A stretch of 64,000 nucleotides of DNA from Orbicella franksi (Eukaryota). The stretch spans positions 12,772,001 to 12,836,000 of the forward strand of contig OZ116698.1 of the NCBI GenBank assembly GCA_964199315.1. Reading direction: 5' to 3'. Below are positions 26,431-33,368 of the stretch, one piece after another; positions within the stretch are counted from its first letter, which is position 1, and each line of letters opens with the position of its first letter. Under the pieces are notes generated by a model. The model searched no databases. It was given only the letters and a program-made list of their open reading frames with translations, and had not been told where the DNA came from. The translations under genes and the position numbers were made by a program.

Positions 26431-29400
26431 ATGGAGGAAGAACACAGAAATATCCTTACAAGGCGTCGGACAGCAATCACGAAAGATTTAGAGGTGAAGA
26501 AGGTGTTGAATAAACTAACTGTTCTTGGTGATGAGGACAGGGACGAGATAAAAGCAGAAAGAACGCGCACGGAGCAGGCTCGTGCCTTACTCGATATGCT
26601 CCCAAGGAAGGGATCAAACGCCTTCACAGATTTTGTTTCTGTTCTATATGAGGTAAAAGGCCAGGAACATCTCGCCGATCTTCTGAGAAAGGATTCAGGT
26701 ATAGAAATACCGACTAATTCGAAAGGTGAGAATATTTCTTTCTCGAATGTAGTGCCGGGGTTCAAACGGACTATTTGTTAAACCTTGAATTGACGAAGGC
26801 ACTGACAGGTTATGAAGTGTATTCGTATTCTCCATATTGGACTGGAACTAGCTTGCACCTGAGGCTAATGTGGGGAGTCGTTTTAAATGCAAATAACACG
26901 AATCTCTTTTAATGATATTCCCCCACATGAGCCTCCATTGCAAGCTAGTTCCTGTTGAGAATACAAATATGGCCCATTAGAGGTCATTAGACCTGGCAGT
27001 TAATGTACTTTGCACAGGCAAATTCAATTTCCATTGGCAATTGTTACCCTGGGGATTATGCAAATCACTCCATGAACACAAAATATTAGAACTTGGCCAA
27101 TATCCTGCACCCATCTTGACCTCACACTTACATGTAGTCAATAGCCCATATGCACATCTTACTGAACGACAATAGCAATGTTTCTATTGCTAAATAGGTG
27201 GAATATTTCAGGTCATGTGTGCTAGAGGCATCCTTGGTTGAGTGTGGATCGATGCTCTCGATCGATACCCACAATCAACATCTCAATCAATACTCGATCA
27301 ACATCCTGATCAGTACTCTGTCGACGCTCTATCGACACTTGATCAATAGTCGGCCGAGTGTCAACAGACTTGTCTGAATCGATCAAAAATTAGTTGCCTC
27401 TCGATCTACTGTCAGCTATGTTGTTGATGGAGTGTCAGCCAAGGTGTCAATGGAGTGTCGATCAAGTATCAGTCGAGGGTACCAATCAAGGGTATCGATC
27501 AACATTCAAATGCGGATCCCACGCCTTTAGTACACACGATCCAATATTGCTCCAACAGTGTATGCTCTCATTGGCTACTTCAAGGTGTAACATTGAAATT
27601 GTTTCTAGCCAAAAGACTCTGAACATACAAGACTGCAAAATCTATGACATCAGAGTGTTAAACTATAAATGTTGACTAATGATTGCTGTTTTCACACTGG
27701 ATCTGCCAATTTCTTTGTTGTGCTTTATAATAAATCACTTAATGACCAGTCTTCCAGAGGAAAATAGTTAATCTTGTTTTTCATCATTATTGTCAGTGTT
27801 TCTGTCAGTTCTACATGTACCTCAGGATACTGAGATTCTTAGCCAATAAAATCAACTGTTTTCCCCATTGTTCATTGCTAATCATGAAATTTTAAGATGA
27901 AATCCGATAGAAAATCAAGCGATTTCAGTTCTTAGTGGACAAAAATCTGGTACCAGAATAATTTTAAGTATTTTACAGTCCTTTTTACATTTTCGTAAAG
28001 CTAAAGATATAAATAGTTGCCTGAAATAACACTGAAAACGATTTCCCTTGGGAATGAGAGAAAACAAATTTCAAAGTTCAGAGAAATTGTGTAAACACAG
28101 GTAAAATTTCATCAGCAGTTTCATTTCACCAGTACTTTCAAGTGATTCATGCGAAGTTCAACATTTGTTTTTGACATTTGGTGTTGCTACATGTAACAAT
28201 GATTTTTTTGAGAAGATATTTAAGACAGTCGTAGTGAAGTTTGCAATACGATGTAAATAATCTTGGTACAAAGTTTTTGTCCACTTGTTACTCGAACTTC
28301 TGGTGAATTCCATCTTAAACATTTCACACCTCACTCTAAAGGGCAATCTTTGAGGAATTCTCTGTTTTTTATTTCTTTGGTAGTTACTGGGGTATTCTAC
28401 AATTGCTCCTTAATTAATGCTTCATGCATTTCAGGCCTGCTCATTCTCACCCTTCTCCTCACACCCTCTCCCAATGTGCAGTATATTTGTTACAACTGAC
28501 AATGTATTAATAACTAATATTATTATTAATATTTTTACTACTTTTTGCTTGTAAAGATGATGTTGGAATGACAAGCCAGCACAGACAAATCCTGCGCAGA
28601 AATGTCGATAGCCTTCATCGCATAGATCTTGATAAATTGGTGGCTCATCTGTCAGCTTTATTAGATGACGAAGATAAACAAAACCTACGTAACACGGCAA
28701 AACCAGCCTACGAAAGGGTAGACATGCTTTTGACTGAAGTACTACCCCGAAGGGGTCCCACTGCATTTCACTCCTTTGTTCAAGGGCTAGAGAAAGTTGA
28801 TCCTTCAATCGCACAAAGTCTTCAACAGGAAGCTGGAATGAAAGGTATCAACAAGATTAATAATAACATTGGTTGGTGTCTTCCACTTCTGACCCTGCGG
28901 GAAGGGGAAGGGAGACTCCCATGTTAAAAGGACAGAGGTGCTCATCGGAAATTTTGAAAAGAACTCCTAAGAAGTATCTGGCTTGAAATTTTTTTTTCAC
29001 CCCTAAGAGGTACCAATTCCAGAACAACACATTAACTGACACTTGCACGGGTAGGTACATGAGACCATCAGGTTACCTCAACAATTTTCCAGTAGCCATT
29101 ATCTTCCTATCCTCTCAATGCACCATTACATTATATCACCTTTCTCTTTCAATAGGATCTTCTAATGGTGAGACATCACCTGGAAAAATGCCTGTACAAG
29201 ACACTGGTTCGTATTCATTAGATTCACTTGTCCAAGACATTCTAGATGAAAGACCAGAGATGTTAAAAAGATTTAGAGAAGAAATGGATGTAGAGGATGT
29301 TTTGGGTAATGGATGGAAGAGGTGGGATATTGTCATTTTCATTATTTCACATTTAATGGTAATCTTAGTTTATAGCAGTGTTCTATTGTTAGGAACTAAA

Positions 29401-31315: not shown

Positions 31316-33368
31316 AGCTTGAAAACGCAAGGGGATGAGGCTTGCAAAAGACAGATAACTCGCAGTGGAAAAATACGTTTGTGCGCAGACTACTGGAAAC
31401 CTACAAAATAGAAATCTAATTTGTCTCTGTACGTTTAGACAACTTCAGGTCCTCTAGCCTTGTTGTTACTTCTTATGTTATTTTTGTTGTTTTTGTTGTT
31501 TTTTTTTCACCCAATCATACCTCTTTGGTACGCTTCGGCGGCATATCAGGCTAGTTTGGTCGAGCCATGGTTGATATTTTCCCAAAATTTGGGGAAAAGT
31601 AGGGGAGCCAAAATGCCCATGGCGAGACCAAACGAACCATGGCTCCTTTTAGGCTACGAAAACAAACTCTCAATATTTAATTCTATTTTTAAAAGTCCTT
31701 TTAGTTTCAGTATAACTCACTGAAAAAATTACTTCCTTCGAAAGTGACCATGATGTCGTAGTCATAGCAGGTCAGTGGCTTGACATCGCAGGTTATCATG
31801 ATAGTTGACACGGCTTCTATTGGCTAATCGCGAATTTGGTTACGGTAAAAGTAAGGAAAACTTTCGGGACAGTTCAAACTGGCTTCCTTGTTATTGTTTT
31901 TTCTTTTTCTTTTTCTCAGACTTTCAGCTAATTCAGCAAGAACATTCGTCCTCTTTAGCCTGCTTAGCTAGTGCTTCATATCGTGCAAGTTTGGAGGTTT
32001 ATCCTCTGTACGTCGGTAAACTGAGTAGTTTTGCGTTGCTTGTGAACGTAAATTGTTGGTGTTTAAAAGCGGAATCAGAATATACGTTTGGGAAGAAATA
32101 CTGGGAATTTGGAATCCTTTTAGTCGATTTCTTTGTTTAGTTATTATTATTTTTTGTTGTTGATGTTGTTGTTTCCATTTTTGTTCAGGTCCTTTGATGC
32201 CGCCTGATAAATTCATAAGAGACGTTGGTTACACCTTCCGAAGAAATCTGACAAGGGATTTGAGCGGTATGTTCTCACTATCCTGGCGAAAGATAAACAT
32301 TAATTAACATAACACCACCTTTTGCGGGACTGGATGTTACGGCGGCAGAACTGAATACTTTGTACCGCTTTGGTGTACTTTTCTAAAGCGATTGTTTAAC
32401 TTTAAGGTGTACTTCTGGTGAACTAGGGTTTATTTTGTATAAACATGCATTTCCAAGTATCTAAGGATTTTCTGCTTATCTTACAACTATTTGGCTGCTT
32501 TATTCCAAACCTTTTCGCTGATTTTTTCAATTTGTTCCATTTAGCTTTTTGTTTCTGCAATTTGACTAATTTTACAGGTATCTTATTCAGCAATTAGATT
32601 ATAAGCTCGAGATTTCATTTTAAACAATAGAGTGTTTCTTAACTTCTGCAGAAATTTGATGTTAAAACAAATATAATTTTAAAAACGTCAAATTTCCAAG
32701 GGGCAGCTATCAGACCGATAGTTCCGAGACATGTTGTCTTTATTCTTCACCACTAAATTTTCTTCCGCGCGCCAGTTCAAAAGCCACGCTGAATTATTTT
32801 CAACTTTTTTAGATGGAAGGCGTGAAAGTCAAATGTAAAATTTTAAAAAAGCATTTGTTTTAAGAACATCAAATTTCCGCGGGGCAACTATCAGCCGATA
32901 GTTCCTCGACAGAAACATTATTGTTTAAATAGCACCTCGTTACCTCGAGGTCGACTATCTCGGACTCCCCGCTCTTTCGAACTTAAATCATGTTCCCCTG
33001 GATATGCTTTTTCGTTGACTTACTAGGCTTTCTCGGAACCCGCGCCACCCCGTACTTATTTGCGAGTTAGTGGGGTCCAGCTGTATTGTCGTCGAAACGT
33101 TGAAGTAGCATTGATGTCTAAAATCTAACGGTGCCTGCAGTAGTTATGATCCGTTGTTTCACTGTTGTTTTCAGCCGACGACCACTGGAAGGTCTTAGCT
33201 GAGAGACTTGGAATGGAGAGCACTGCAATTCAATACCTTGACTCCCGAAGTAACAATCCGGCCGATGAGGTCCTCAGATATTGGGAGGTCAAAGCTCATA
33301 GCACCGTGGGAGCGTTGTATGACCATCTAGTCCAGATAGGATGTCCACTAATAGCGGATCTACTTTAA
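26431..33368 (+). CDS. Death-fold-only multidomain protein: CARD-CARD-death domain-(death-domain-like)-death domain, 546 aa
   Basis: Exons 26431-26725, 28557-28844, 29156-29321, 29825-30078, 30675-30944, 31920-32015, 32189-32266, 33175-33368 total 1641 nt in one open frame. CARDs: HRNIL..LLDMLPRKGSNAFTDFV and HRQIL..LLTEVLPRRGPTAFHSFV. DDs: GNGWKRFYKELGL..PTLNVIKGW..ATVQALLSAV and IRDVGYTFRRNL..DHWKVLAERLGM..PADEVLRYW..TVGALYDHLVQIG. Confidence 0.82.
31216..31314 (+). repeat. (GATT)n/(GACT)n microsatellite, probably the tail of a LINE 3' fragment
   Basis: A long GATT run directly follows aaataaagtt. Confidence 0.85.

Follow-up and report, generated by a model that had tools for sequence, protein, structure and literature searches.

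Death-fold adaptors decide whether the clustering of a receptor leads to caspase activation or to NF-kB signalling and, to our knowledge, all of those characterised join two modules. A row of CARD and death domain (DD) exons in the stony coral Orbicella franksi, contained in a window of 64,000 nucleotides (the whole stretch of DNA that was analysed), raises the question of whether such modules can be strung together five to a chain, and what a protein of that kind would do. The exons form a single gene, which is real and expressed. Its 514-aa product is made up of five death-fold modules in the order CARD1-CARD2-linker-DD1-divergent death fold-DD3, the divergent module being assigned from its predicted structure. 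We found no name for this five-module architecture in the databases and no description of the gene family in the literature, searched by architecture, by locus tags and for CRADD/PIDD in corals; the kind of protein, a death-fold adaptor, is already known.

Gene structure and expression

On the plus strand, an intact spliced ORF opens with the ATG at 26431 and closes with the TAA at 33366-33368 (Table 1). A first-pass annotation, made from the DNA letters alone, had counted eight exons and 546 aa; the ORF, 12 orthologues and the RNA junctions instead define seven coding exons and 514 aa. The GT-AG exons and uninterrupted frame that it had reported are upheld: all seven coding exons have AG/GT borders, and five of the six junctions are confirmed by RNA reads or contigs, the CARD-to-DD junction among them. 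Four of these (26725>28557, 28844>29156, 29321>29825 and 30078>30675) occur in the raw poly(A) reads (run X24) as well as among the transcript contigs (runs X9 and X1), with 8 raw reads and 2 contigs covering the joint from CARD2 to DD1. For the joint between exons 6 and 7, an X1 contig ending at 32266 is extended by 30 letters that match the start of exon 7 (from 33175). The sixth junction, 30944>32189, was not directly seen in the RNA runs because depth over exon 5 is low at the 95% identity cut-off; it is supported by full-length cDNA-derived orthologues.

Table 1. Features of the adaptor gene and its upstream region (positions in the window)
Feature	Position	Strand	Evidence or remark
Head-to-head intergenic/promoter region and 5' UTR of the adaptor gene	26148..26430	.	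Also serves PIG-C (GPI2), which lies upstream on the minus strand
Exon 1: start codon and CARD1, aa 1-98	26431..26725	+	PF00619, PF16739; joint 26725>28557 in RNA
Exon 2: CARD2, aa 99-195	28557..28844	+	Symmetric phase 1-1, 288 nt
Exon 3: Ser/Gly-rich linker and first helix of DD1, donor 29321	29156..29321	+	Both flanking joints in raw reads and contigs
Exon 4: remainder of DD1	29825..30078	+	PF00531 Death
Exon 5: middle domain, divergent death-fold-like helical module, aa 336-424	30675..30944	+	Phase 1-1; AF2 fold
Exon 6: linker and first helix of DD3	32189..32266	+	Colinear with orthologues; RNA contig into exon 7
Exon 7: remainder of DD3 and TAA stop	33175..33368	+	PF00531 Death

The gene is assembled from phase-1 exon cassettes, with short linkers between the modules. 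An alternative donor for exon 3, at 29305, was ruled out: the donor at 29321 restores the death-domain motif GNGWKR|FYKELG and is also the donor seen in the RNA. Database isoforms from other corals omit CARD2 or DD3; skipping of exon 2, which is annotated in Pocillopora, was not seen at a share of at least 5% in the RNA runs examined. At the 5' end, an RNA contig stays colinear with the DNA into exon 1 from 26300, where the region compared begins, and the neighbouring minus-strand ORF (25935-26147) was identified as PIG-C by its match to PF06432 GPI2 (E 3.8e-10).

Conservation and copy number

When aligned with 12 full-length orthologues (504-527 aa), the 514-aa model matches them from one end to the other, with gaps that are short and confined to linkers, and therefore no coding exon is missing. 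Collinear orthologues within this size range, all of them labelled "uncharacterized," occur in at least eight scleractinian genera from both major clades, including Acropora, Montipora, Porites, Pocillopora, Oculina, Orbicella and Desmophyllum, and one very divergent assembly has a locus (L014) with all seven exons. The order of the five modules is preserved across Scleractinia. Mean identity to the 12 full-length orthologues is 45-63% for each of the five modules, and the gene tree agrees with the robust/complex split of corals. The gene is single-copy in this genome, apart from dead partial copies: just past the window, about 35 kb downstream, the DD1 exons (exons 3 and 4) recur five times in tandem, all five copies being dead. 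A single-copy gene with its module order preserved in both major stony coral clades implies a function under selection. When the CARD2-DD1 part of an Orbicella orthologue was used to search for canonical CRADD or other bipartite relatives, only exon-sized fragments of the same five-module family were returned.

Could the single ORF be an annotation artefact, either a pseudogene or a merger of a tandem-CARD gene with a DD gene next to it? The introns are long (up to 1.8 kb), one junction is missing from the RNA and the dead copies of exons 3 and 4 are near, all of which would fit such an artefact. Spliced reads and contigs, however, connect exons 1-2-3-4-5 and exons 6-7, placing CARD and DD exons in a single transcript, and the full reading frame is kept in every orthologue. 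Several corals, moreover, have contigs of 1.8-3.4 kb that carry an intact orthologue ORF (510-524 aa); these contigs are far shorter than the spliced locus of about 7 kb and were therefore read as transcript-derived, most likely from cDNA. The artefact is largely refuted, and we regard it as extremely improbable.

The five modules

CARD1 is recognized by PF00619 CARD (E 6.4e-16; 58.6 bits against a cut-off of 23.9) and also, above the cut-off, by PF16739 CARD_2 (E 4.6e-11; 43 bits). CARD2 falls under the Pfam cut-off in the window (CARD 19.3 bits, E 1.2e-3; CARD_2 E 4.6e-5), and its counterpart in the orthologue P0055 reaches 24.1 bits with the CARD profile. Profile comparison (hhalign) of CARD2 with CARD1 gave a probability of 99.3%, marking the two as clear duplicates of each other, and the best solved match of the CARD2 profile is the CARD of RAIDD/CRADD (3crd, E 5.3e-9), with the next match four orders of magnitude behind (E 5.7e-5). 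CARD1 is thus a PF00619 member by Pfam itself, and CARD2 by its orthologue, by hhalign and by the RAIDD match; the two tandem CARDs first proposed from the open reading frames are both genuine, and the LPR(K/R)G..AF..FV motif described for them is present in each. Among solved structures, CARD1 matches the second CARD of mouse RIG-I best (E 9.5e-9), in line with a similarity to RIG-I/MAVS-type CARDs; the CARDs of Apaf-1, caspase-9, CARD8 and RAIDD match it almost equally well, that of RAIDD at mid-rank (E 9e-6). Both CARDs also have ICEBERG among their PDB matches.

The claim of two clear death domains was also sound. DD3 is a member of PF00531 Death from exon 7 alone (E 1.6e-9; 38.2 bits). 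DD1 scores 22.2 bits against a cut-off of 22.6 when exon 4 is taken alone; with exons 3 and 4 joined, in the 94%-identical Orbicella orthologue P0033, it reaches 38.5 bits (E 1.3e-9) and covers profile positions 3-84 of 86. The best sequence matches are weak for both, being the DDs of NRADD, ankyrin and p75NTR for DD1, and those of FADD, MyD88, IRAK4 and Pelle for DD3; the RAIDD DD was not among the sequence matches of either. In an AF2 model of an orthologue the exon 3 linker ahead of DD1 is disordered, and the full-length model (pTM 0.30) does not give the relative packing of the modules, the tandem CARDs included.

Between the two DDs, the first-pass annotation had placed a helical segment of about 100 aa with DD-like spacing. 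The segment is shorter, at about 85 aa encoded by one exon that is single-copy in the genome, and is modelled with five helices and a short N-terminal turn; its helical fold is predicted with confidence (AF2 pLDDT 88.4, pTM 0.78), and most of its structural matches are death folds. It matched no Pfam family and, in profile searches, nothing in the PDB, nor did hhalign find profile similarity to the DD or CARD modules of its own protein; Foldseek against the PDB gave nothing significant. The top VIA-align match is 2of5_A (Z 5.6, rmsd 2.8 over 72 residues), a chain of the PIDDosome DD complex that we take to be the RAIDD DD, and about 33 of the 50 matches listed are DD, DED, PYD or CARD structures, with modest scores throughout (best Z 5.6); the DEDs of vFLIP, cFLIP and PEA-15 are among the best. 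A structure search of Swiss-Prot put the DDs of p75NTR, TNFR1 and Fas on top, with TM up to 0.53 and E >1. In view of these modest scores, we read the module as a putative divergent death fold.

No enzymatic, NACHT or TIR domain was matched in any exon (Pfam), in agreement with the first reading of the locus, and neither the exons nor the orthologues contain a helicase or NACHT-LRR sensor part. For the protein as a whole, the nearest ESM-Atlas language-model cluster is the 'CRADD family' (score 0.87).

Related genes and a possible role in antiviral signalling

The closest CARD paralogues of the gene in the same genome are CARD-coiled-coil genes (45-49% identity). They are followed by a CARD-caspase at C3:33.37 Mb, with a CARD 42% identical to CARD1, and by the multi-copy CARD-TRADD_N-CARD-DD genes at C5:22.7-23.8 Mb, with CARDs 36-42% identical to it. 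In the RIG-I-like receptors (RLRs), the CARD exon is a detectable paralogue of CARD1 (35% identity, E 3e-4).

This last relationship bears on an antiviral reading, in which a RIG-I/MAVS-type CARD1 would take the signal from RLR tandem CARDs and the DDs would relay it to FADD, RIP, IRAK or MyD88-type proteins, so that MAVS and TRADD functions would be combined in one chain. The CARD_2 and RIG-I matches of CARD1, the likeness of DD3 to the DDs of FADD, MyD88, IRAK4 and Pelle, and the presence of RLR genes in the genome would all suit it. But the CARDs of Apaf-1, caspase-9, CARD8 and RAIDD match CARD1 almost as well as that of RIG-I, and the RLR exon is among its weakest paralogues. In Anthozoa, the single-CARD protein CARDIB adjoins RLRb and is reported to be a repressor that binds it (bioRxiv 10.1101/2025.11.22.689925). 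Such linkage defines CARDIB, whereas the present gene, at C1:12.80 Mb, is unlinked to the RLR loci (C1:5.91 Mb, about 6.9 Mb off on the same contig, and C2:12.02 Mb); the two share CARD_2-type similarity, as do MAVS-like anthozoan CARD proteins, but CARDIB has one CARD in place of two CARDs and three DD-type modules. MAVS itself carries a C-terminal membrane anchor, where the coral protein ends in a DD. Taken together, we find an antiviral role quite improbable.

Comparison with characterized death-fold proteins

CRADD/RAIDD is the closest parallel: like the coral protein, it consists of death-fold modules only, with an N-terminal CARD and a C-terminal DD. It is bipartite, however, with two modules in about 200 aa against five in 514 aa, and the likeness is uneven among the modules: CARD2 is of RAIDD type, as judged from the gap between 3crd and the next match, whereas DD1 and DD3 are unlike the RAIDD DD by sequence and the middle module resembles it in structure only (Z 5.6). 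FADD, MyD88 and ASC likewise couple one death-fold subfamily to another without an enzyme, and FADD and MyD88 supply best sequence matches of DD3; they too have two modules instead of five, and no DED, TIR or PYD is found by sequence in the coral protein. Tandem adjacent CARDs are shared with RIG-I, MDA5 and NOD2, and CARD1 matches both the second CARD of RIG-I and the CARD_2 model, but sensors of the RLR and NOD2 types have a helicase or a NACHT/LRR part, whereas the coral protein has neither and joins its tandem CARDs to DDs.

A probable multivalent adaptor or a possible brake

On balance, we consider that this gene, expressed and single-copy in a stony coral of the robust clade, probably encodes a cytosolic adaptor, made of death folds throughout, that acts in a CRADD/RAIDD-like but multivalent manner. 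As judged from the domains, the three DD-type modules would join the helical oligomers of upstream DD proteins, which may be death receptors, a PIDD-like protein or others among the more than 150 DD exons of the genome; clustering would then draw the tandem CARDs together, so that they could nucleate or recruit a CARD effector. Foremost among the candidates are the coral CARD-bearing caspase-3-like initiator caspases, or else a CARD-coiled-coil/Bcl10 module. Scanning the genome with PF10461 for a PIDD-like gene gave no hit, but the controls gave none either, so that the result has no bearing on whether one is present. Among the nearest CARD relatives of the gene, the CARD-coiled-coil genes rank at least level with the CARD-caspases, and therefore the output could be NF-kB-type signalling instead of caspase activation. 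A complex prediction for the Orbicella tandem CARDs with the CARD of the C3 CARD-caspase gave a score of 0.00, which counts neither for nor against binding.

The same architecture could serve inhibition: a multivalent decoy would cap or sequester DD and CARD assemblies, restraining caspases or the CBM module in the manner of ICEBERG/COPs and FLIP. The protein is without any effector domain; ICEBERG is matched by both CARDs, and the FLIP and PEA-15 DEDs by the middle module; CARDIB offers an anthozoan precedent for a CARD repressor, and isoforms minus CARD2 or DD3 could give dominant-negative forms. Known death-fold inhibitors, however, are small, with one or two domains, and the presence of CARD and DD types in one conserved chain is typical of adaptors that bridge, CRADD, FADD and MyD88 among them. 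The observations suit activation and inhibition alike, but we consider a brake unlikely.

As a bridging adaptor, the protein would be a candidate for what connects the death-domain receptors of corals to their CARD-bearing caspases. Coral CARD-bearing caspase-3/7-like initiators are implicated in the responses to bleaching and disease, and for coral biology the gene offers a testable candidate for the platform that activates them. One study (PMC7586219) showed that CARD-caspase-3/7-like enzymes of corals act as initiators and proposed that a PIDDosome-like platform, as yet unidentified, would serve them; its supplements make no mention of CRADD.

A more specific form of the adaptor reading, which we put forward tentatively and regard as unlikely, is a single-chain pre-assembled nucleator. 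Its three DD-type modules would make up part of a single helical layer in an assembly like the PIDDosome or Myddosome, lowering the nucleation barrier, and its tandem CARDs, like the RIG-I 2CARD 'lock-washer,' would seed filaments of CARD-caspase-3-like initiators; the protein would then both replace CRADD in hexacorals and be the platform proposed in PMC7586219. If so, the expanded DD repertoire of corals would have a direct tie to cell death under stress, in disease and during bleaching. The five-module chain also provides a natural system for testing how the nucleation threshold of helical death-fold signalosomes depends on valency and pre-assembly.

The genes on C5 show that chains of several death folds, with two CARDs and a DD in single-domain exons, have also been built elsewhere in this genome. 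They differ from the adaptor in carrying a TRADD-like N domain between the CARDs, in the one DD exon found and in their copy number.

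Gene Structure and Transcription

The genome around the adaptor gene is eukaryotic in character (GC ~40%). Enumeration of GT/AG combinations from the ATG at 26431, with an open frame required, yielded seven coding exons (1545 nt, 514 aa) in place of the eight exons and 546 aa proposed by the first-pass annotation. The product aligns end-to-end with 12 full-length orthologues (504-527 aa), with gaps confined to linkers, and we therefore consider that no coding exon is missing. Given the divergent PIG-C exon 283 bp upstream of the ATG, the gene starts at this point and shares a head-to-head bidirectional promoter with PIG-C. 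Five of the six introns are in phase 1 and the intron within DD1 is in phase 2; CARD2 (288 nt), DD1 (420 nt over exons 3 and 4) and the middle module (270 nt) each form a symmetric 1-1 cassette, the pattern that assembly by exon shuffling would leave. Intron 5 carries a long microsatellite, and GC content and skew change at the large intact retroelement ORFs downstream of the gene.

Features of the adaptor gene, its surroundings and related loci (window positions unless a contig or locus is named; C1, which carries the window, and C5 are contigs of the O. franksi genome, L0xx are loci, and X24, X9 and X1 are RNA runs)
Feature	Position	Strand	Content	Joint to next exon: support
PIG-C first coding exon	25935-26147	-	Pfam GPI2, E 3.8e-10	
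Coding exon 1	26431-26725	+	CARD1	26725>28557: 6 raw reads (X24), contigs of both X9 and X1
Coding exon 2	28557-28844	+	CARD2	28844>29156: 8 raw reads (X24), contigs of both X9 and X1
Coding exon 3	29156-29321	+	First part of DD1 module	29321>29825: 14 raw reads (X24), contigs of both X9 and X1
Coding exon 4	29825-30078	+	Second part of DD1 module	30078>30675: 3 raw reads (X24), contigs of both X9 and X1
Coding exon 5	30675-30944	+	Middle module	
Microsatellite	31212-31324		(GATT)n, intron 5	
Coding exon 6	32189-32266	+	GT/AG model	X1 contig
Coding exon 7	33175-33368	+	DD3, TAA stop	
LTR retrotransposon ORFs	38468-44833	+	gag, protease, RT, integrase-like	
LINE-type ORF	47971-50256	+	Reverse transcriptase	
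DD1 tandem copies (L022/L023)	C1:12836597-12846067 (extended window ~64597-74067)		Five copies, period 2124 bp	
CARD + coiled-coil genes (L015, L016, L018, L019)	C5:24173632-24193950		Three or four in tandem, CARD9/CARD11-like layout	
CARD/TRADD-like_N/CARD/Death genes	C5:22.69-23.80 Mb		At least five paralogues; examples L020:2609-2971, L020:6891-7286, L020:8140-8478, L021:1990-2301	

Fourteen coral-labelled RNA runs contain 0.22-0.33 of the words sampled from 26431-32430, a stretch with an exonic share of 0.225. For the splice check, reads of two raw poly(A) runs, together with two sets of contigs, were mapped on 26300-32299 at an identity cut-off of 95%; the first four joints were recovered by both reads and contigs, and an X1 contig terminating at 32266 runs on into the start of exon 7. 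The joint 30944>32189 was absent from the joints found in this mapping, and exon 5 depth was low in X24, probably reflecting a source organism that diverges there beyond the cut-off. Orthologous ORFs of 510-524 aa sit on contigs of only 1.8-3.4 kb, which are read as transcript-derived because they are far shorter than the ~7-kb spliced locus, and this comparison of sequences supports continuity of exons 5 and 6. Since the RNA joints show a single transcript, the CARD and DD exons belong to one gene rather than to two; that the gene is an annotation artefact is essentially excluded, and its identity as a gene for a single five-module chain is well supported.

Annotated isoforms are present in P0006/P0035 (Pocillopora verrucosa X2), P0032 (Oculina X5) and P0033 (Orbicella X2); among these, exactly CARD2 is missing (the symmetric exon 2 being skipped), or most of it, and in another isoform read-through of the exon-5 donor gives “GVVGE” and then a stop, without DD3. 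No exon-2 skipping at a share of at least 5% was seen in the RNA mapped on 26300-32299.

The CARD and Death Domain Modules

The two tandem CARDs and two clear death domains first read from the sequence are borne out by profile analysis. CARD1 matches Pfam CARD (E 6e-16); CARD2 lies under the Pfam cut-off in the window sequence, and was recognized through the mutual match of the CARD1 and CARD2 family profiles (99.3% probability, 32% identity) and through its top solved-structure match, the RAIDD CARD (E 5.3e-9; next 5.7e-5). The solved matches of CARD1 are broader (RIG-I CARD2, CARD8, Apaf-1, caspase-9, and RAIDD); a rival reading makes the protein an RLR-linked antiviral adaptor. DD1 scores 38.5 bits in a 94%-identical Orbicella orthologue and DD3 38.2 bits (E 1.6e-9), and the two show only a distant likeness (hhalign E 7e-4). 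In the PDB both find weak matches, DD1 to NRADD, ankyrin and p75NTR and DD3 to FADD, MyD88, IRAK4 and Pelle.

The Middle Module

Exon 5 finds no match in Pfam or among PDB sequences, and its profile does not resemble those of the protein's own DD or CARD modules. It carries the conserved motifs FFGDL, Y.IR.FT and R...IK.LR, and HMMER, run exhaustively over 1.84 billion representative proteins, returned only 19 relatives, of which three multi-domain proteins have it in the same placement, ahead of a C-terminal DD. When the full-length Oculina orthologue is modelled with AF2, the module forms its own folded unit (pLDDT ~80-87), and the window exon, modelled with 27 homologues (pLDDT 88.4, pTM 0.78), forms five helices and a short N-terminal turn.

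Foldseek against the PDB gave no significant match for the module. A search of 48,161 representative chains with VIA-align, which is independent of Foldseek, placed first 2of5 chain A of the PIDDosome DD complex (Z 5.6, rmsd 2.8 Å, 72 residues), which we take to be the RAIDD DD, and about 33 of the best 50 matches were DD, DED, PYD or CARD domains. Among Swiss-Prot models, searched separately, the p75NTR, TNFR1 and Fas DDs ranked highest (TM up to 0.53), and the best Atlas match was a sponge cluster partly carrying a Death domain (TM 0.58). Because death folds are enriched among these matches, although every single score is weak, the models make it quite probable that the module is a very divergent death fold, not assignable to a subfamily. 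The first-pass description of a DD-like segment agrees with this confidently modelled helical fold and its death-fold-enriched matches.

Related Genes and a Possible Role

In the O. franksi genome, DD exons number at least 150 and CARD exons at least 35. The closest CARDs to CARD1 and CARD2 (45-49% identity) belong to a cluster of genes encoding a CARD and a long coiled coil, followed at 42% by CARD-caspases at C3:33.37 Mb (a CARD exon and a single-exon Peptidase_C14) and C10:30.81 Mb, on two further contigs. Elsewhere on C5, paralogues in which CARD, TRADD-like_N (PF20694, E 8e-8), CARD and Death exons follow one another in this order represent another predicted multi-death-fold architecture of this genome.

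To our knowledge, every characterized enzyme-free protein joining DD and CARD modules is a bridging adaptor. By this domain logic we favor a role as a CRADD-like, multivalent bridging adaptor, with the CARD-caspases or the CARD-coiled-coil proteins as candidate effectors; a decoy or brake is a less likely rival reading. Likeness to CRADD/RAIDD is seen in the best solved match of CARD2 and in the “CRADD family” as nearest language-model cluster of the Pocillopora orthologue (score 0.87). Coral CARD-bearing caspase-3/7-like enzymes act as initiators, their CARDs are nearest to that of caspase-2, and their activation has been proposed to occur on a PIDDosome-like platform, itself unidentified (PMC7586219).

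Distribution and Copies

Collinear orthologues were found in Montipora, Acropora (two species), Porites (two), Pocillopora (two), Oculina, Orbicella and Desmophyllum and in several further transcriptomes. All are labeled “uncharacterized,” “hypothetical” or “Death domain-containing protein,” and our literature search found no paper describing the CARD-CARD-DD-middle module-DD architecture, in agreement with the initial remark that no named gene with it was known. Corals, amphioxus and sea urchins are all well known for shuffled death-fold architectures; this gene stands out by its five modules, its orphan fifth fold and its strict conservation as a single-copy gene.

The window protein and O. 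faveolata LOC110048990 share 94% identity, and the middle module is shared with A0A2B4S753 (514 aa, an AlphaFold DB cluster representative; TM 0.87). In the gene tree, the split between named robust-clade genera and named complex-clade genera is fully supported. A very divergent orthologous locus, L014 (ENA ERZ25071792, ctg18917, locus positions 5089-13874), retains the full set of seven exons (34-58% identity) and, on its long branch, is basal in the tree and to the robust/complex split, so the family may be wider than crown Scleractinia; the relatives found included none from sea anemones or octocorals, in searches that cannot prove absence.

No close copy of exon 1, 2, 5 or 7 is present in the O. 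franksi genome (next best matches at most 50% identity). Past the window end, a segment of ~980 bp is repeated in tandem, which matches window 29108-30089 (the whole DD1, from exon 3 through intron 3 to exon 4) at 84-85% identity; splice sites are intact, and one in-frame stop in the exon-3 part is common to all five copies, which are most likely dead and amplified after the stop arose. In P0012 of Montipora foliosa (347 aa, named “doublesex- and mab-3-related transcription factor A2-like”), a DM DNA-binding domain is linked to a middle module and DD3 that are 65% identical to the Montipora family member; either another gene has captured a partial duplicate, or two gene models were fused in annotation. 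Two Oculina patagonica loci on one 49-Mb contig (P0029/P0032; LOC144667044/LOC144627991), with products 95% identical over their common parts, represent either a recent family duplication or an assembly duplicate.
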